Source: Paraphysomonas bandaiensis
Taxonomy: Eukaryota; Protista; Chrysophyceae
Length of the DNA: 30,634 nt
Reading direction: 5' to 3'
Assembly (NCBI GenBank): GCA_965644295.1
Contig: CBFFRP010000438.1
Location: 1 to 30,634 of the forward strand
Positions 5,658 through 30,634 of the stretch are shown in pieces. How positions within the stretch are numbered: the first letter of the stretch is position 1; every line of letters begins with the position of its first letter. A program made the position numbers and the translations under genes. The notes below the pieces were generated by a model. The model worked only from the letters and a program-made list of their open reading frames with translations. It was not told the DNA's origin and did not search any database.

Positions 5658-7203
5658 ATGTCGCATATATCAGTTCTTAATGATGATGTTCTTCATCTCA
5701 TTATCTCTATGATCCCACATGGAGCTCTCCTTCCAGTGAAACTGTCTTGTAAGAGATTTCACACTATGGTTGATTTTGCATACATCTCGCCAAAGTACTG
5801 GCACTTTTAAGGTTGCGTGGATAGGATATAAGCGGGTGATAAAATGGGTTCCTAACCCTCACTATTGTATTAACAACTCAATGGTCTCATGGGCTCTGTC
5901 TATGGGTTGCCCACATGTCGATCTAATGAGTACATGTGCACTATGCGGCAGACTAGAGCAGATGATACACCTCATGAGCCATATACGTACACATACACAC
6001 ACACACGACCCCACATACATATGGGGTCAGAGATTGACTGCAGCTAAAGCTGCACAGGGTGGACACTTGGATGTACTGAAGTGGCTTCGTTCACAGGACC
6101 CTCCATGTCCCTGGGGTAGAATCACTTGTATTAAAGCTGCAGAGGGTGGACACTTGGATGTTCTGAAGTGGCTTCGTTCACAGGACCCTCCATGTCCCTG
6201 GGGTAGAATCATTTGTATTAAAGCTGCACAGGGTGGACACTTGGATGTACTGAAGTGGCTTCGTTCACAGGACCCTCCATGTCCCTGGGATGTACTTACT
6301 TGCAGGTATGCTGCAGAGGGTGGACACTTGGATGTACTGAAGTGGCTTCGTTCACAGGACCCTCCATGTCCCTGGGATAGATGGACTTGCATTTGTGCTG
6401 CAAGAGGTGGACACTTGGATGTACTGAAATGGGTTCATTCACAGGACCCTCCATGTCCCTGGGTCTGGGATGCGGAAAGTTGCATTGGTGCTGCAGAGGG
6501 TGGACAATTGGAGGCATTGAAGTGGCTTCGTTCACAGGACCTTCCATGTCGATGGAATGAACAGACTTGCTATGCTGCTGCACAGGGTGGACACTTGGAG
6601 GTACTAAAGTGGCTTCGTTCACAGGACCCTCCATGTCCATGGAGTAAAACCTCTTGCGATTGTGCTGCAGAGGGTGGACACGTGGAGGTGCTAAAGTGGC
6701 TTCGTTCACAGGACCCTCCATGTCCCTGGGATGAAGAGACTTGCAAGGATGCTGCTTATTGTGGACACTTGGATGTACTGAAGTGGCTTCGTTCACAGGA
6801 CCCTCCATGTCCCTGGGATGAACTTACTTGCAGGTATGCTGCAGAGGGTGGACACTTGGATGTACTGAAGTGGCTTCGTTCACAGGACCCTCCATGTCCC
6901 TGGGATGAACTTACTTGCAGGTATGCTGCACAGGGTGGACACTTGGATGTACTGAAGTGGCTTCGTTCACAGGACCCTCCATGTCCCTGGGATGAACAGA
7001 CTTGCTTTACTGCTCTTATTGGTAAAAGATTGAATGTTCTGAAGTGGCTTCGTTCACAGGACCCTCCATGTCCCTGGGATGAATGGACTTGCACTACTGC
7101 TATCAGCTATGGATGGACAGTTGAATGTCCTGAATCGGCTTCATTCCCAGGACACAGGGAAATGTTGCTGCAGGACACAGGACACACAGAGAGGAGGAAG
7201 TAG
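5658..7203 (+). CDS. F-box-like protein with 12 ankyrin-like 29-aa repeats (GHLxVLKW...CPW type). Model: exon 5658-5768, 43-nt intron, exon 5812-7203
   Basis: 5658 ATG gives MSHISVLNDDVLHLIISMIPHGALLPVKLSCKRFHTM (F-box pattern L-x-DD-VL-x-LI...CKRF). A GT..AG intron at 5769-5811 joins it in phase 0 to ORF 5770-7203, which carries 12 x GGHLDVLKWLRSQDPPCPW. A frameshift is an alternative to the intron. Confidence 0.8.
6049..7150 (+). repeat. 87-bp tandem coding repeat, 12 full units plus a frameshifted 13th
   Basis: ggacacttggatgtactgaagtggcttcgttcacaggaccctccatgtccctggg recurs with period 87 (e.g. 6061, 6148, 6235); one unit has 6 extra bp. Confidence 0.97.
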
Positions 7204-7404
7204 GCAACCGGCGCTTGTGCTGCAAAGGCATCCCTCTTGCGCCGGGAAGGCGCTCCGTACAAAGTTTTATTATTCTTTCCTTATCACTCTAAGTTCTTAT
7301 CATAATAAGAGTAATACTATACTTTAAATAACAACTTATCAAGATTTGATATATCTTACGAATGGAATAAAATTAACACCTAATACTGAGAATTAGAAAT
7401 TATA

Positions 7405-7752
7405 ATCCATGTCTCATATCATTCACTAATTTCATGTTATCACTACAACCACTCTTCTCTCGTACGATATTACATCGTCACTATCCTCTCTGCATGACCA
7501 CAATATATCCGTTTTACGTTTCACTACTATATACTTAACTATATACTTAAGGTCATGGTGTAAGGGACAGTTGCACCATGGTGCCCGCAGCGATGCACAA
7601 GCAGTCACTAGTAGTATATAGCACGCCCAGTTATTAGTTAGCCTAGAGATGTAAAACTAGTTTCTGGACACAACTGTTCTCATGTAATAATCAGATATTC
7701 TTATATGGTCATGGTGTTAGATCTTATAATACGGTTAACCACTACTGTATAC
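7405..7752 (+). repeat. Old dispersed repeat family, also at ~16300-16545, ~16845-16875 and ~18050-18175
   Basis: Shared blocks: aatttcatgtt, gtacgat..ta(c/t)atcgtcactatc, gttaaccactact; aagcaaaactcaa/cagcaaaactcaa is shared by the 16.5 and 18.1 kb copies. Confidence 0.6.
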
Positions 7753-7770
7753 TTTGAGGGGCGGTATAGT

Positions 7771-9640
7771 TATATTTAACCACGGGCAATAAGGAGGTTA
7801 TATCGTCCCGCGCTCAAAATTTTGAAACGAGGGCGAAAAGCCCGAGTTTTAATATTATATTGAAAATATTGAAATTCTTATTATTTAGCAAGCGGCGTTA
7901 AAAATCTGCACCAATGTAGTGGCTAGTTGAATGCTAGACAGACTATTTAGACCTCTACCCATAACTAATCAGCACACACTTTTTTTATCCTACTATTTAG
8001 CGCTACAGAAGCTGCTTGTGCGTCGCCGCAAGCACCAAGGTGCGACCAAACCGTTCTTAATGTTGATTCTGAGGTTCGCCGTGATCGTGTGTCCTAGGAC
8101 TCACTGGCGGATGTGATCAGGGGGTCTCCCCCTGGGATGAGATTCCGCCGGGCTGTGTGGAGGCACAGGGTTCTGTAGTAAGGTTCTGAGTGTACCTAGC
8201 GTTAGGCGTGTGGTCTGAGAGGTGGGTGGAGGGGTGTAATGTGGTGCTGTGGCGGGAATATAATCAGTGAGCAAAGCAAGTGGTGGATCGGTCATTTTTG
8301 GAGATTTGGTTTGTCTAGTCCCCGTACATTTTTGCGGTCCGTCACCACTATTGTCGGAGGAAAATTCCTTCCCTTGGTGAGTGTATGAGGGGTAGTTGCA
8401 GGATTGTCGCTGTTGTGTCCTTTGAACTCCTCTGGACCTATATGGTGATTCCTTATGGAGACGAATGCTTACAAGTGTAGGAATTATTTCTAGCAGTGGA
8501 TGAAGCTTTTGCTGTCTTAGCCAGCGGCAGAGAACACATGCAAGAGAGTGTATAGCTGGACAGGAGTGGGATATGAGGGTCATCCGGTGTGTCCAGCAAC
8601 AGGGAGTCGAGAGGGAGTGTGATGATCCAAGATGAGGCACACTATCTGATTGAGGAGTGTGAGACTGTGTACTATAACTAGGTCTGCCAAGGTCGAGTAC
8701 TCTGATAGACCTATGCACGAGATGATCATGATGGTCTTGTGGAGAGACTCGGATGTCCTCAACTGCCCTTGTTAGTGTGTACGTTAATGCAGGGGGTACA
8801 GGCTGAGGCATATATAGTGTGCGTGGAAGAGAGATGACGGCAAGGTATCAGAGACGAAGGGAGGGGAGATAGTTTGTCTGGGGGTTTTTGAGGAGGAGGT
8901 AGAGTGTAAGGTGCGTGTGTACGACAGTGCAGTGGTGTTATGAGTGTGTTGGACAGAGAGAGAGAGAGCTGGTGATGTGTCCAACAGTACAGGTATACAA
9001 GTACATGTACATCACCCAATGAGGTGTGTATACTGTAGGGATGATAGGTAGGCAGGGTGATGGGGGAGGCTGCTAGGTTACTGCACCTCTGGCAAACCAT
9101 ATTGACTTGGCTTGTGTGGTTGTCAAGAGATAGTCCATTTGTACTATGGAATGGGGTCGATAAGAAGGAGGGGGTGCAGAGCATGTACGAGGAGGCAGTT
9201 TGTGATTACCTGTCCACGGGAGCCACGCTATAAATCGCTGTAACCGGAGAGATCGGTGTACTAAACGTGGGTGTCTACTAGGGTGGTAGTAGAGAGTAGG
9301 TTGCAGCGCTGCAGTGGTGCAGGCACATGATTTAACTGAGACAGTTAGGCAAAAGGGGAATTGCAATGCCAAGCAATGGAGCTTGGAATGTTTGGACAAG
9401 AGTTTTGTCGGTAAGGTGGTGGTGTGATACAAAATGCAGCAGTGTGTGCGGAGAAGATGCCATACTGGGCCTGGGCCAGCCAATGTAACACAGCCACGGT
9501 CTCAACTGAGACATAGAGCGTGGTGCGAGATGAAAAGATGTAACTTTTTGTTGGGCTATATTTTCAACCAGATCAAGGGAATTATCCCGAGTCTTAAAAG
9601 TTAGACAAGGGACGATACTCCTTATCCCTAGGTTTAATTG
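7771..9640 (-). mobile_element. Decayed element with imperfect inverted ends and a possible tyrosine-recombinase remnant (Crypton/DIRS-like)
   Basis: Left end ataaggaggttatatcgtccc plus hairpin gagggcgaaaagcccgag; right end gggacgatactccttat plus aagggaattatcccgag. The interior is GC-richer, with frame-broken minus-strand motifs RTSES, IGPEEFKGH and RQ*W*RTAKMY resembling YR R..HxxR..W..Y boxes. Confidence 0.4.
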
Positions 9641-9740
9641 CAGCTTATCCTCATGATGTTGAAAACTTAATAATATTAGATCGTAGAGCTATTAGAAGCT
9701 TGGTTTCTGTAATACGAAATAGGTGTTTCCTGATTAACAT

Positions 9741-10179
9741 TGCCCCATTCTGAGAGCGTACCCTAGTGAAGTGCTAGTGTTGACTAAGCTAAGTAACGTA
9801 TAGATTATTAATAAAAACCTCAGCGTATTCTCTGTGTGTTGGCACCAAGAAAACTTGTTCAGCTAGATCTACACTATACTTGCATAGCCTATATGAGATT
9901 ACGAGAAACCCCGCGCATTCTAGGGGAGGGAAGGGGGCGGCTAATGTCGCACTAGACCTATACTGAGTCATGCATGGTCACGAAAATCCCCGCGTAATCT
10001 TTGATAGGTAGTAATGGGAAGGTACACATGGTCCTACTAGAATCTGCGCGAATTATATCTATAAAAGTCATGCATAGTTATGAAAAATTCCTCATAATCT
10101 CAGCAAAGGTTAACACAAGAGTGAGGGGACAATAGAATCTGCGCGTGATCTATTTGGTCAGCTAAGTTGGTACATGGGG
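9741..10179 (+). mobile_element. MITE family copy (one TIR, other end truncated)
   Basis: Begins TGCCCCATTCTGAG and aligns over ~440 bp to the reverse complement of ~15440-15851; internal motifs agaatctgcgcg and ccccgcg are repeated. Confidence 0.75.
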
Positions 10180-10287
10180 CAGCTATCACACGTTTATAGC
10201 TATATGCATCTTGTCCAGCATAGCTCGAGCATATGCAGAGATAGTGTTCTCAACATCCTTTGTATATTTTTGTTCCAAGATGCCTCT

Positions 10288-10385
10288 AATATTGAGACAA
10301 CAATTTTGTGTATTCCATCTGTAGTTGCACTTCAGTAATATAGCACATTTTTGCTTCAATTTATTCCCGAAAAATAAGATGCATA
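10288..10385 (+). repeat. Dispersed repeat shared with ~23555-23650
   Basis: tattgagacaacaatt...tgtattcca...gtagtt...cagtaatatag...tgcttcaatttatt.ccgaaaaataagatg is present in both. Confidence 0.75.
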
Positions 10386-26003: not shown

Positions 26004-26408
26004 GATGTTTAATAATATCTAGTGTGTGTTATCTACAGTCTACTTAGAGCTATTGTAGGATAATGTTAGTAACACTATATATCTTTCATGATATTATAGA
26101 TAGAATTCAATTATATAATTGATAGATGTGTTTAACATACTTGTTAACTATCTAGATATGCTCATACAGGAGGCACGAGGTTACTTAATAATGACTTAAC
26201 ATACAGCAGTACATGTACATGTATATAGAGACAGCTGTGTACTTTTCAGACAAAAAAACTGCATAAAATAAACTGGATTTTTCAAGTTATAAAGCCTACC
26301 CTCTGTACATGGTGTACATACTGCTGTAAATGTACAAAGGAGGACATACGAAGTACAACAGCCTCGTACCACTCATAAATCAGTAGGAATTCCTACATAT
26401 CCAGTCGC

Positions 26409-26470
26409 CGTCAAAAGTCCGAACAAGTCAAAAGTCCGAACAACCGTTTTTTGATCAAAAGTCCAAAAAT
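26409..26470 (+). repeat. Subterminal direct repeats in the TIR (candidate transposase-binding sites), mirrored at ~30562-30623
   Basis: GTCAAAAGTCCGAACAA twice in tandem plus ATCAAAAGTCCAAAAA. Confidence 0.75.
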
Positions 26471-26723
26471 GTCGTTCGAAACTCTCATATTTCTCTCACT
26501 TCAGTGACATTGAAATCCAATTAACACAACACTTGAACTGACCTGACACTGGAGACTTATCATTCTATGGCAATCATGGACCACTGGACACGAATATGCA
26601 ACCAGATTTTCATTTCATACACTGCTTCTCTCAATATCACAAGGTTTCTTATATCGTTCCAATTCATCGAGTACCCCTCACATCCGGCACCATTTCTCAA
26701 AATCCCTACATTGAATTTTCAAC

Positions 26724-29195
26724 ATGACGATCTTAAAAGGTTTGTATACAGATGGACTCTCACATATATGAGTGCTGTGCAATTCCTACGACTTGTTTTT
26801 GAATAATGTCTGATTTGTGTTCTTTCAGTGACTCGTCTATGCGACTACAAGAATCTTCGCAAAAAGAACCGACAAGACGCCATAGACAAGCTCCGGGCAG
26901 CTAAATTTGCAAAAGCACAGTCGAAAGACAGCTATGGATCTGATGTTGACCTCAATGCTATTCTCGATGAATATGAAAAGGATAAACCTAGTAATGTTAG
27001 TGAGTTTTGTCGCAATCACAACATCACTCGTGGAGTGTTCTTCAGGTAACTCTTTATTGTCATAACATACGTATTTCTGATGGAATATCTGCTTTGTAGG
27101 GCCAAAGATAAACGAGAAAGAGGGCTAGATCCCAATCGTAGCTATCTTGGGCGCCCGACCTGGACGGACGAAGACGGTGTGGCAATGTTGTCCGACATGA
27201 GCCATGAGGCCACTGCAACTGGGAACTCATTCACTTCTGCATCCGATGGGGATTTTGTTAAAGCACTGACCAGTGCAGGGACTGTCAACAAGCAAGGGGG
27301 GAACTTCCTTAAGAATCGTAAGGCACCCTCAAATTCCACCATAGGCAGGTATTTGAAAAAGGTGTCACCTGAAAGTGTGGATGCTCCGTCCACAGTCAAT
27401 GCGCGAAGGCAGGAGGCCATCAATGATGCATTCAATCCCTTATCCAGCGTAGCCATAGTAGGTGCCATCTTAGGGGTATCACCAGAAAATCCTCAAGGCA
27501 ACCGATTTCATCCGTGGAACAAGACCAATTCGGATACTCACAACATCATGCTAGGATATAGTAAGCAGAGGCGGGCACGTTGTCCACAGGTATGTATAGT
27601 TGGCGATTCGTGGTTACTTTATTTACAAAATTTTGACATAGAATATGAAAAAACTGATGAAACTTAACCGTCTTTCTGTCGCCATTACCAACAAGAAGAA
27701 GATACGATCCGTTAAGTGCACGGCTACTATGAGTGCAGAGCCTGCTCTACTCAGCCATATTGTTGTCATCCGGGAACGAAAATGCAAGGAGTTGAAGTGT
27801 TTCAAGTTCAACATGAATGGATGGGTACAGAGCATTATTTTTCGTCCTGCACACAGGATCAAACAGTGCACTGAGAGCAAAACTACAGATGACGCTGAAA
27901 CAGTCTGGGAGGACGTTGATATGGAGGAGAGTGATGAAGCTATGCCGGGTTTGAAGGAAGTTGAGGGTAGTGATGAGAAGGAAGAAATTGCTCAAGATGA
28001 TAAAGGTTCAAAATGTAAAAGTAACGATGATAAAGGACTAAACCCAAGCGGAAATGGGGATGATTATTGCTCCGGTCCTGACTTGGACACACGGGATCAA
28101 ATGCGAGCCCTTCGGGAGCAGCATGACGACCGTGAATGTGATAAGCTGGAAGAGGCACATGCTACACAAAAGAAACCACTCAGTGCAGAGGCAACTTTCG
28201 GAATGTTTATTATTGATGAACACATTCTCCCTGTAGTTGTTAAAAACAGAGACCGAAAAGAGAGAACATTGAAGAAACTCGATGTGAATTACTCGAGTAT
28301 AGAGAAGCAGGTCCCTATTCTTTGGTCACTTGATGGCGAATATGGACTCATACGTGCTCTTATCGACGTACTAATGGAAAAATGGGGTTCTTTCTCCATC
28401 GAGTTTGTCAAGTTAGCAGCCGCATACACCATGTGTGCACAGCCTTGTGATCTCACGCGATGTTTTGCTTTGTGCAATGAGTATTGTAAGAAGGCGGAAT
28501 TTTACGACCCCAAGACGAAGGGCGCAACTCCTATCTTCCTTCCATACGTTGTCCAGTATATGAAGGACATCAAGATGGATAGCGACTCGATAACAACGTA
28601 TAGAAATTTCTTTCATCGCTTGCCTACAATGATCACCAAGTGTTACACTGGTGACAACATTATATCTGGCTTCGCCTCGGCCGCTTTCGAGCCGTTTGAT
28701 GCTGAAGTCCTGCTTCGGAAAAACCCTCATATCTGCCAACTTCCTGAAGAAGAAGCGTCCCGCCTTCTTAATAATGTTATACCAGAACTCATACAGCTTG
28801 CCAGCCTTCGCGGTCTAACACGTGATGATGACATCTCCGCAATCCTTACTAAGCATGACGTTAAGTTAGCTACACCTATGTTGAATTTGAACGAGCTTAG
28901 TATTATCCGCCAGAGAGCTGTATGGCTCAATCATAGCGTTGAGGTCGAAAGACGCAATGATATGCTACGTGCTTCTACCCGAGCCAAAGCTGAGAAAGCT
29001 GCTGAGAAGGAGCGCAAGAAGGCCGAGGCTGAGCACAAAAAGGCAGAGGCTGAGCACAAAAAGGCGGAAGCTATCAAGGCGAGAAAGCGTAAAAAAGAAG
29101 AGGCTGCCGAGAAGAGAGAACGAGAAAAGACAGAAAATGCTGTTGAAAGGGAGAGGAAGAAAGCAGAGGCTGCCAAGAAGATAGAACTAAAGTAA
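26724..29195 (+). CDS. pogo-like DDD transposase, 758 aa, 4 exons (26724-26739, 26829-27045, 27100-27589, 27642-29195)
   Basis: HTH-like SNVSEFCRNHNITRGVFFR, GRP linker, PSNSTIGRYLKK; D1 in PWNKTNSDTH; ATMSAEPALLSHIVVI; D2 in PILWSLDGE; D3 in IEFVKLAAAYTMCAQPCDLTRCF; NIISGFASAAFEPFD; K/E-rich coiled-coil tail. Splice phases are consistent. Confidence 0.85.
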
Positions 29196-29660
29196 AGACA
29201 ATTGTAAGATAGCTGTGCCACACTTGCCCCTCGCAGACGTAAGATCTTGTTGGGCCCTGTTCCGTGAAGTGTGCCACAGATACAAAGTATAGTTAGCTTA
29301 ATTATGTTGTTTTAATACGCTTATTTACGTTGTTTTAATACCGCTGATTTATGATTATTTTCTTCTTGTAGTGGTACACTAATAGCTATCGTCACTAAAT
29401 ATATTAGCAATCGTTATTGTATATTACTATAATAAAGTTAATTTTGTGCTGCTGCATGATATGTGTCGCATAGCTGGTAGTACAATCAAACGATTTTATG
29501 TAGCCACTGTCTGTTATCACCTATCATGATACCACAACCTAGCTAGCTATGTCTACAAATTCAAGAGAGTGGAGCATGAAGAAATAAAACTTACGAATTA
29601 ATCGGATTACCACTCCAGTTGTTAATAAGAATTCAGCAACGAATATGTAGATAGTACTAT

Positions 29661-30098
29661 CTAGTTCTTGTTTGCATTGTCTAATTTGGTCTTTAGGTAG
29701 AGTGATATTATCCAAGAGGTTATCATGAACTGCTTAAGAAACTTGCTCCCTTGAATGTTGACACTCTTTACACTCCTTCGTGTCTCTATGTAATCCCCGT
29801 AGGGCACAGAAGTGGACAAGATCACAGTAACAGCTTCCTCATACGCCTGGCCAGCCGGAACGAACACACGCGCTTCATTCTTCCAATTCTAGACCCGAAT
29901 AGCTACAATTACCATTTGTCTACGTCCTATAAGATAGATTGTTCCTCATAAATATGTATAAACGCATAGATAGACAAAAACAGCTACCTGAGGAGCACTC
30001 TTCGAGAAATATTTTGCTCTCAGCAGTACTGGTTCACACTGCTTAACTGCGCAACCTTGACCAACTAAAGTCATTATTGAGGTCAACATCTGATCCAT
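29661..30098 (-). CDS. Speculative second, convergent small ORF starting in the right TIR (exons 30098-29988 and 29888-29661, ~112 aa)
   Basis: Open frame MDQMLTSIMTLVGQGCAVKQCEPVLLRAKYFSKSAPQ ends at CAG|GTAGCT and can splice in phase 0 to TAG|NWKNEARVFVPAGQAYEEAV...; no homology recognised. Confidence 0.25.
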
Positions 30099-30634
30099 AG
30101 CTGTCTTTCGACTGTGCTTTTGCAAATTTAGCTGCCCGGAGCTTGTCTATGGCGTCTTGTCGGTTCTTTTTGCGAAGATTCTTGTAGTCGCATAGACGAG
30201 TCACTGAAAGAACACAAATCAGACATTATTCAAAAACAAGTCGTAGGAATTGCACAGCACTCATATATGTGAGAGTCCATCTGTATACAAACCTTTTAAG
30301 ATCGTCATGTTGAAAATTCAATGTAGGGATTTTGAGAAATGGTGCCGGATGTGAGGGGTACTCGATGAATTGGAACGATATAAGAAACCTTGTGATATTG
30401 AGAGAAGCAGTGTATGAAATGAAAATCTGGTTGCATATTCGTGTCCAGTGGTCCATGATTGCCATAGAATGATAAGTCTCCAGTGTCAGGTCAGTTCAAG
30501 TGTTGTGTTAATTGGATTTCAATGTCACTGAAGTGAGAGAAATATGAGAGTTTCGAACGACATTTTTGGACTTTTGATCAAAAAACGGTTGTTCGGACTT
30601 TTGACTTGTTCGGACTTTTGACGGCGACTGGATA

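Follow-up and report, generated by a model that had tools for sequence, protein, structure and literature searches.

The window analysed here is the whole of contig C438 (positions 1-30634; GenBank CBFFRP010000438.1), 30,634 nt in a 62.5-Mb eukaryotic assembly of the chrysophyte Paraphysomonas bandaiensis, and its end holds a transposon whose long terminal inverted repeats, here called arms, reach into the transposase gene between them. An inverted repeat joins 26398-26956 to 30076-30634 with 558 of 559 positions identical, a match that cannot have arisen by chance; its sole mismatch, a T at 26941 against an A at 30091, is synonymous in the frame of the transposase gene. Because the right arm reaches the final base of the contig, the window copy alone is insufficient to fix the outer limit of the repeat, and the termini were fixed from other copies in the genome. 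These place the element at 26401-30631, giving 4231 bp with 556-nt arms that are 555/556 identical, a start of CCAG and an end of CTGG. A preliminary description of the locus had reported a DNA transposon at 26398-30634 with near-perfect repeats of 559 bp: the transposon and the repeat are real, and the extra length came from counting, on each side, 3 nt of a palindromic ATAT target-site duplication. The contig stops 3 nt beyond the element, most likely because the assembly graph branches at the repeat edge.

Termini, copies and mobility

The outer features of the element are as follows.

26397-26400, no strand: left target-site duplication, ATAT (exact 4-bp repeats in 7/7 flanked copies)
26401-26956, plus strand: left, gene-side arm, 556 nt, beginning CCAGTCGCC (555/556 identical to the right arm; terminus common to other copies)
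26410-26426, 26427-26443 and 26454-26470, plus strand: three 17-nt subterminal direct repeats, putative transposase-binding sites
30076-30631, minus strand: right arm, 556 nt, which repeats, facing inward, the upstream region, the ATG (30308), intron 1 and 128 nt of exon 2
30632-30634, no strand: initial 3 nt (ATA) of the right target duplication, which the contig end truncates

Exact 4-bp direct repeats are found at the junctions of all seven fully flanked copies (ATAT four times; ACAT, ATGT and ATAG once each) in place of the TA duplication that had been expected, although TA is the central dinucleotide of the duplication in five of the seven. A 2-bp duplication (TA, CA or TG) was also considered and was dropped after all junctions had been tabulated, since 4 bp fits every copy. 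The ATAG duplication belongs to a copy on contig C258, where a TA reading needs an additional coincidence.

Two further full copies, on C263 and C68, bring the number of full copies to three, which are 99.98% identical, and a single internal-deletion derivative that lacks the equivalent of 28307-29349 (1043 bp) and carries a short filler is present in three copies (on C211, C146 and C395). These two full copies and the three deletion copies lie within large contigs, have unrelated flanks and lose homology at the same bases in every case; 4231-bp structures identical to that of the window sit inside contigs of 587 kb and 178 kb with matching 4-bp duplications. Identity between arms thus does not run on into flanking DNA in those copies, and every copy of the 4231-bp family is long-armed. 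Because near-identical copies occupy different sites, each with its own target duplication, the recent activity suggested in the preliminary description is borne out, and the element is shown to have mobilised a deletion derivative in trans. We conclude, at a probability of roughly 0.75, that this is a real, autonomous and recently mobile cut-and-paste DNA transposon; that figure applies jointly to the whole reading developed below, namely the fold group of the transposase, the recent mobility, an older inverted duplication and copying between the arms.

Matches to the 17-nt subterminal motif are confined to the neighbourhood of the two termini (four, against 0.09 expected by chance), and we infer that the three repeats are binding sites for the transposase. 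The element contains no inner copy of the motif and so lacks the inverted repeat/direct repeat (IR/DR) arrangement.

Several individual copies have features of their own. The deletion copy at C395:69787-72976 measures 3188 bp against 3204-3205 bp for the other two, a difference that seems to be located at one end, within the terminal repeat region, and that would represent variation in the number of putative binding sites. An old copy of the autonomous family at C363:153245-156621 is 89% identical, lacks the right end, and has lost, through a 5-codon deletion, the QPCDL motif that holds the third catalytic aspartate. At C258:78240-78245, a copy of the non-autonomous subfamily B described below is inserted within a few bases of the terminus of an element of another type, represented by a paralog on C159, and is thus nested beside a distant relative.

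The transposase gene and its relatives

Four exons within the element encode a transposase of 758 aa. The window exons were searched separately, with two related public proteins, P0002 and P0156, as full-length stand-ins. P0156, a 759-aa protein of the same 90% cluster from a 2886-nt JGI contig, corresponds to the four window exons; its MTILK start and both intron-split codons match, and it differs by one extra K and one V-to-A change. It represents either an assembled transcript, already spliced, or a spliced gene model made independently, and the agreement supports both the ATG at 26724 and the three GT-AG introns. Two other relatives, P0002 (620 aa) and P0003, are unbroken and collinear across the exon 2/3 and exon 3/4 junctions. 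The interior of the element is arranged as follows, with HTH standing for helix-turn-helix, ORF for open reading frame and UTR for untranslated region.

26724-26739, plus strand: exon 1 (ATG and 13 nt), within the arm; P0156 begins MTILK, and a split V codon spans exons 1 and 2
26740-26828, plus strand: intron 1, GT-AG, 89 nt, within the arm; splice sites checked, absent from P0156
26829-27045, plus strand: exon 2, encoding the N-terminal helix (in the arm, to 26956) and then, outside the arm, the first HTH; collinear with P0002, P0003 and P0156
27046-27099, plus strand: intron 2, GT-AG, 54 nt
27100-27589, plus strand: exon 3, encoding the second HTH and the first catalytic aspartate, D223 (codon 27533-27535)
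27590-27641, plus strand: intron 3, GT-AG, 52 nt
27642-29195, plus strand: exon 4 including the stop codon, encoding the remainder of the catalytic domain together with an acidic insert and a K/E-rich tail
28332-28334 and 28449-28451, plus strand: exon 4 codons of the catalytic aspartates D473 and D512 (DD38D)
29196-29731, no strand: unique non-coding interior that lacks both an ORF under selection and similarity to the gene side, presumably the transposase 3' UTR
29732-30075, minus strand: decayed inverted relic covering the last part of exon 2, then intron 2 and some 210 nt of exon 3, found by local alignment and in register with the arm

The arm therefore holds the upstream region (323 nt), exon 1, the whole of intron 1 and 128 nt from the start of exon 2 of a spliced transposase gene, in line with the preliminary description; the ATG at 26724 (mirrored at 30308) and the GT-AG intron at 26740-26828 are present as it had described them. 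The arm ends directly before the first HTH; in an AlphaFold2 model of P0002, the counterpart of the residues that it encodes is a long N-terminal helix. On the right, the reading that starts in the arm and ends NDFSWSRLRS, with its stop at 30043-30045, is likewise present.

Two further features of these coding regions may be recorded here. The C-terminal tail (28985-29192), rich in K, E and A with repeated KKAEAEH units, has no counterpart in P0002 or P0003 and swamps word-based protein searches. Each arm also contains an ATG-initiated ORF of 79 codons (26567-26806 on the plus strand, 30226-30465 on the minus strand) that spans exon 1 and intron 1 out of the transposase frame; it is open in subfamily B, the old copy on C363 has an in-frame 8-codon deletion in it, and it may be a chance product, given the conservation of that stretch.

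The affiliation of the transposase is not apparent from domain models. A Pfam scan found no transposase family, including DDE_1 (PF03184), DDE_3 and Transposase_1, in the window ORFs, in P0002 or in 47 relatives; a six-frame DDE_1 search of the genome found 10 other loci and no copy of the 4231-bp element; and the mariner model PF01359 has no match in the genome, which therefore offers no mariner comparator. A profile search of 1.84 billion representative proteins recovered 396 relatives at E <=0.001. Two word-index protein searches gave two matches each, the K/E-rich tail probably having consumed the words, PDB sequence searches with P0002 and with profile A2 returned nothing meaningful, and neither of two metagenome scans, one using P0002 and the other P0156, brought up a relative, their one match being of low complexity and to the tail. 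As for other domains, P0003 carries PF13551, and one of the 47 relatives matches HTH_psq (E 0.004).

The AlphaFold2 model of P0002, built with 150 of the 396 relatives, has a predicted local distance difference test score (pLDDT) of 84, and P0002 is 39% identical to the window protein over exon 4 and collinear with it over all exons. The seven best Foldseek matches to this model are all the Mos1 mariner transposase. In VIA-align comparisons, its catalytic domain matches SETMAR at Z 13.4 (root-mean-square deviation 3.1 A over 192/197 residues), Mos1 at Z 12.9-13.2 and Sleeping Beauty at Z 12.0, and the next class, the integrases, reaches at most 7.3. The predicted catalytic triad of D223, D473 and D512 has DD38D spacing; its second and third aspartates (D416 and D455 in P0002) are invariant or nearly so in the 47 relatives, and all three align to aspartates of the genome's own DDE_1 proteins. 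Between the first and second aspartates lies an insert of about 190-250 residues comprising a long helix and an acidic disordered stretch. Toward the N terminus, residues 44-171 of the P0002 model form two helical bundles with weak resemblance to the Pax paired domain (Z 5.5), Tc3 (4.7) and CENP-B (4.2).

Comparisons by hhalign with the genome's pogo proteins score 27-35 over 158-271 columns, with probabilities of 3-18%, and are collinear but weak; those with its Tc1 proteins score 21-26 over 60-78 columns, and a pogo-Tc1 control scores 43. The transposase has a QP.D motif at the third aspartate followed by a G-W...G..P motif, which we take to resemble those of pogo-type enzymes, going by DDE_1. 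The modelled fold thus places the transposase in the Tc1/mariner/pogo group, on what looks like a deeply divergent branch, and the profile scores suggest a family whose distance to pogo, and likewise to Tc1, exceeds that between pogo and Tc1. The label 'pogo-like' given in the preliminary description fits as regards the general fold group; given the lack of a DDE_1 match in the copies or the 47 relatives and profile probabilities of 18% at best, it is a reasonable nickname, loosely supported, and not demonstrated membership.

Concerted evolution of the arms

Position 26956, where the preliminary description ended the inverted homology, is not its true limit. Weaker inverted similarity continues past it to about 27313 on the gene side and 29732 on the right, at 60-75% identity, and the right-hand sequence aligns with the gene side, in register within a few nucleotides, over about 325 of the next 345 nt. 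The local alignment scores 46, against 12.7 +/- 1.2 for shuffled sequences and 14 for a same-strand control, and no inverted homology is detectable beyond 27313. Read in the gene frame, the relic is shifted by a 1-nt indel and interrupted in the HTH by an in-frame TGA; its long open frame has a ratio of non-synonymous to synonymous substitution (dN/dS) of 0.98-1.25 against subfamily B and C-type copies and contains stop codons in B, and the transposase exons have a ratio of 0.27-0.54. Because its dN/dS is close to 1 and B carries stop codons in it, 29732-30075 is a neutral relic, not a second gene. The same relic is present in the 76%-diverged C-type ends. At the inner edge of the arm, identity falls from 99.8% to about 60% at one point, and these alignments show the 556-nt arm as the evidently young outer part of an older inverted duplication, about 900 nt long, of the 5' end of the element.

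The history of the arms is recorded in the non-autonomous subfamily B (copies on C79, C232, C258 and C78), which is about 3.5 kb long and has degraded ORFs. Its arms are 91-93% identical to those of the window, and within each B copy the two arms are 99.5-99.8% identical. Between the autonomous family and B, 37-40 substitutions are found on both arms against 1-2 that are specific to one arm, and among the B copies 5-13 substitutions are common to both arms against 0-2 that are arm-specific. Lineages that differ by 7-8% thus each keep near-identical arms. Since independent decay of two arms cannot yield this pattern of shared substitutions, the arms evolve in concert, their sequence having been repeatedly copied from one to the other.

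The boundary of the copied tract has also moved. In the autonomous family, the identity edge lies at 556 nt, with gene-type sequence on both ends. The arms of B are 652-690 nt long, carry relic-type sequence on both ends and join the gene at about element position 631, so that relic-type sequence has replaced the gene-side segment encoding the first HTH. That the edge has moved, and that the gene side of B has been overwritten by the relic, means that copying runs in either direction. Neither the concerted evolution of the arms nor the nature of the arm boundary as the edge of a copying tract inside an older, longer inverted duplication had been part of the preliminary description.

We propose that the arms copy each other by gene conversion or by template switching during repair of the excision gap, and that such copying would persist in autonomous lineages only where the gene side is spared. 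The promoter, ATG and intron cassette of the right arm would then be mainly a by-product of arm copying. We see no sign here that this cassette is a selected device, and it may nevertheless yield antisense RNA.

Some of our observations sit uneasily with parts of this account. Divergence between the autonomous family and B is mosaic along the arm, reaching 27% over the opening 62 nt of exon 2 and 4.7% in the remainder of the arm (p = 9e-8), and the arms as a whole diverge by 7.5%, against 14% for the neutral relic and about 21% for the interior; this combination of a mosaic with slow arm divergence needs selection on the arms or exchange between elements, simple arm-to-arm conversion being insufficient. 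Conservation of intron 1, which is set out below, hints that it may have a function in the arm, for example as a cis-acting element. With respect to mobility, no empty site was recovered, the left flank of the window being unique in the genome; at C258 the flank consists of the terminus of another transposon, and the flanks of that transposon differ from copy to copy. The 4-bp duplication deviates from the TA rule of the superfamily, and since a TA duplication with a preference for an A..T context fits six of the seven flanked copies, the 4-bp call depends on the ATAG copy and on parsimony. Finally, P0156 is possibly its depositor's gene model on a genomic contig, which would make it weaker support for the ATG.

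The hot spot of divergence between the autonomous family and B (26829-26890, mirrored at 30142-30203) has changes at 16-17 of 62 nt, altering some 10 of the 15 residues with which exon 2 opens, and suggests either a mosaic history or a fast-evolving transposase N terminus. Intron 1 (mirrored at 30204-30292) is the least diverged segment of the arm, with 0-2 of 89 positions changed against B and 13 of 89 against C-type copies; the latter figure, 15%, compares with 30-37% in other parts of the arm (p = 0.004 and 6e-5). The terminal 17-nt motif has no copy within intron 1.

A distant paralog in the genome, at C159:116836-120613, with an intact and intronless frame of 611 aa, has arms of 143 nt that end about 290 nt before its ORF; the ordinary length of these arms indicates that the long, gene-entering arm is specific to the 4231-bp family. 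The C159 arms are 85% identical and begin TA|ATTCTAGAGG, and the C159 element has two tandem subterminal repeats of about 17 nt that are analogous to those of the window element. Many short paired derivatives of the C159 arm sequence occur elsewhere (for example, C362:149471-152308 and C141:77612-79995) and look like a MITE (miniature inverted-repeat transposable element) family. Further distant paralogs, at C432:428905-430680 and C428:13983-15521, have frames of 628 aa and 669 aa, and near these only inverted matches of 55-61 nt were seen. Among the host genes upstream of the element in the window (5770-14540) are those for an ankyrin-repeat protein, for a TIR-domain protein at 10842-12584 and, on the minus strand, for a zinc-type dehydrogenase at 13500-14540.

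Other readings, related systems and implications

The older inverted duplication might have arisen not within a single element but from two diverged relatives, one intact and one truncated, lying head to head, whose left ends were mobilised as a unit and whose outer 556 nt were then homogenised. Such a composite would explain why identity drops so abruptly at a single point, with the first 32 nt or so interior to the arm boundary hardly alignable; transposases of this type act on any matching pair of ends, and no relic of a different original right terminus would be required. We nonetheless regard a composite as possible rather than probable: the interior holds no trace of an original right end and no remnant of the 17-nt motif, and the decayed sequence remains in register with the arm to within a few nucleotides over 345 nt. 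The presence of the relic in C-type ends makes either origin old. The data do not separate the two well, and both require later homogenisation of the arms.

A second alternative concerns function rather than origin. The right arm could be a selected self-regulatory device, giving rise to a convergent transcript antisense to the transposase mRNA at its 3' end, or to read-through RNA whose two arms pair as a 556-bp hairpin, either of which would feed RNA silencing and so limit transposition; arm identity would then be kept because it is useful, and the conserved intron 1 could be a cis element, such as a binding site or enhancer, required on both ends. Antisense or hairpin RNA is plausible, since the arm holds a full copy of everything upstream of codon 49; it would be an inward-facing copy of any left-arm promoter, together with the ATG, intron 1 and 43 codons. 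An antisense or hairpin model is established for Sleeping Beauty and Tc1 (PMC3878927). Slower divergence of the arms than of the neutral relic, with intron 1 the most conserved part, fits as well, but could also come from constraint on the gene side spread by conversion. Subfamily B, moreover, keeps the same arms with no gene left to regulate, and the C159 paralog manages with arms of 143 nt. Self-regulation, and with it a useful arm identity and a cis-acting intron, therefore seems to us unlikely; if true, it would give a Tc1/mariner-type element a built-in, sequence-encoded governor of copy number.

Two readings assign a protein product to the right end, and both fare poorly. The 58-aa reading frame of the right arm, consisting of the N-terminal helix and 10 unrelated residues, exists and matches the long helix that precedes the HTH in the P0002 model, so that it might encode a dominant-negative peptide; yet conservation is lacking in the tail past the arm's edge, where B carries an indel and ends at a different stop, and no other part of the arm has changed faster between the autonomous family and B than these N-terminal residues, all of which makes a functional peptide very improbable. 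The preliminary description had also raised a two-gene element, which would resemble MuDR in having a second functional gene that reads inward from the right arm. An open frame of 75 codons (29664-29888, minus strand) is indeed homologous to part of exon 3, but its neutral substitution ratio, its stop codons in B, the frameshift and in-frame TGA of the exon-2 part and the loss of the splice donor in B leave this idea with scarcely any credit. Lastly, an assembly fold-back, or two head-to-head insertions at the contig end, might be suspected from a right arm that ends 3 nt before the end of the contig, and can be set aside given the identical structures found with unrelated flanks and matching duplications inside the 587-kb and 178-kb contigs.

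We therefore return to an autonomous transposon whose arms copy one another, and compare it with known systems. Like Mos1, Sleeping Beauty, Hsmar1/SETMAR and pogo/Tigger, it has terminal inverted repeats and one transposase with an RNase-H-like domain with three aspartates, and its putative N-terminal HTHs may correspond to their bipartite DNA-binding domain. Unlike these Tc1/mariner/pogo elements, it has a 4-bp duplication, no Pfam match, three introns, a protein of 758 aa and the large insert between the first two aspartates. The range of DDxD spacings used for pogo takes in its DD38D (PMC7325037), and DD38D is mentioned once in PMC9219625.

MuDR has long, identical terminal inverted repeats with inward-directed expression signals at both ends. 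The window element shares the long, near-identical repeats but has no second gene, the inner sequence of its right arm being a neutral relic of the 5' part of its own transposase gene. Among Tc1-like elements with long terminal repeats, Bari3 and the IR/DR type exemplified by Sleeping Beauty have several direct repeats near their ends and a promoter in or overlapping the left repeat, and it has been proposed that sense and antisense RNA arise from inward activity of both inverted repeats (PMC4120734, PMC3878927). The window element is similar in its long terminal repeats and in the direct repeats near its ends; unlike Sleeping Beauty, it has its repeat motif near the tip only, with no inner direct repeat, and whereas the 256-bp repeat of Bari3 ends 99 bp before the ATG (PMC4120734), the window arm crosses the ATG and an intron and stops within exon 2, 233 nt beyond the ATG.

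The closest parallel in terminal repeat dynamics is Galileo, a Drosophila element of the P superfamily, in which the length of the terminal inverted repeat varies through recruitment of internal sequence and pieces of the transposase ORF and is greatest in non-autonomous copies (PMC3573991, PMC4168063). Subfamily B has likewise recruited internal relic sequence, so that its arms measure 652-690 nt against 556 in the autonomous family. The two systems differ in superfamily and in what was recruited, which is described as the 3' end of the ORF in Galileo and is here the 5' end together with the region upstream of it, the start codon and an entire intron. The window element, moreover, is autonomous and apparently functional, and the concerted evolution of its arms and its decayed inner relic were measured directly. 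It is thus a DD38D transposon of the Tc1/mariner/pogo fold, as modelled, that is invisible to Pfam, makes a 4-bp duplication and has Galileo-like dynamics of its terminal repeats at the 5' end of a working gene, and we regard it as an instructive variant of known transposon behaviour, not as a new kind of element.

Two broader points follow. The transposase belongs to a family of 396 relatives that escapes current Pfam transposase models and apparently makes a 4-bp duplication, and for both reasons elements of this type are likely to have been missed or misfiled in the annotation of protist genomes. In addition, one small family shows how, in a DNA transposon, long terminal repeats lengthen and are kept up, through an old inverted duplication, a sharp edge of recent copying and arms that evolve in concert, and through a sister subfamily in which the process was reversed and the DNA-binding domain lost. 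Since copying from arm to arm shifts the length of the arms, the length of the terminal inverted repeat is a poor classifier, and this family offers a tractable case in which conversion between arms can be measured.

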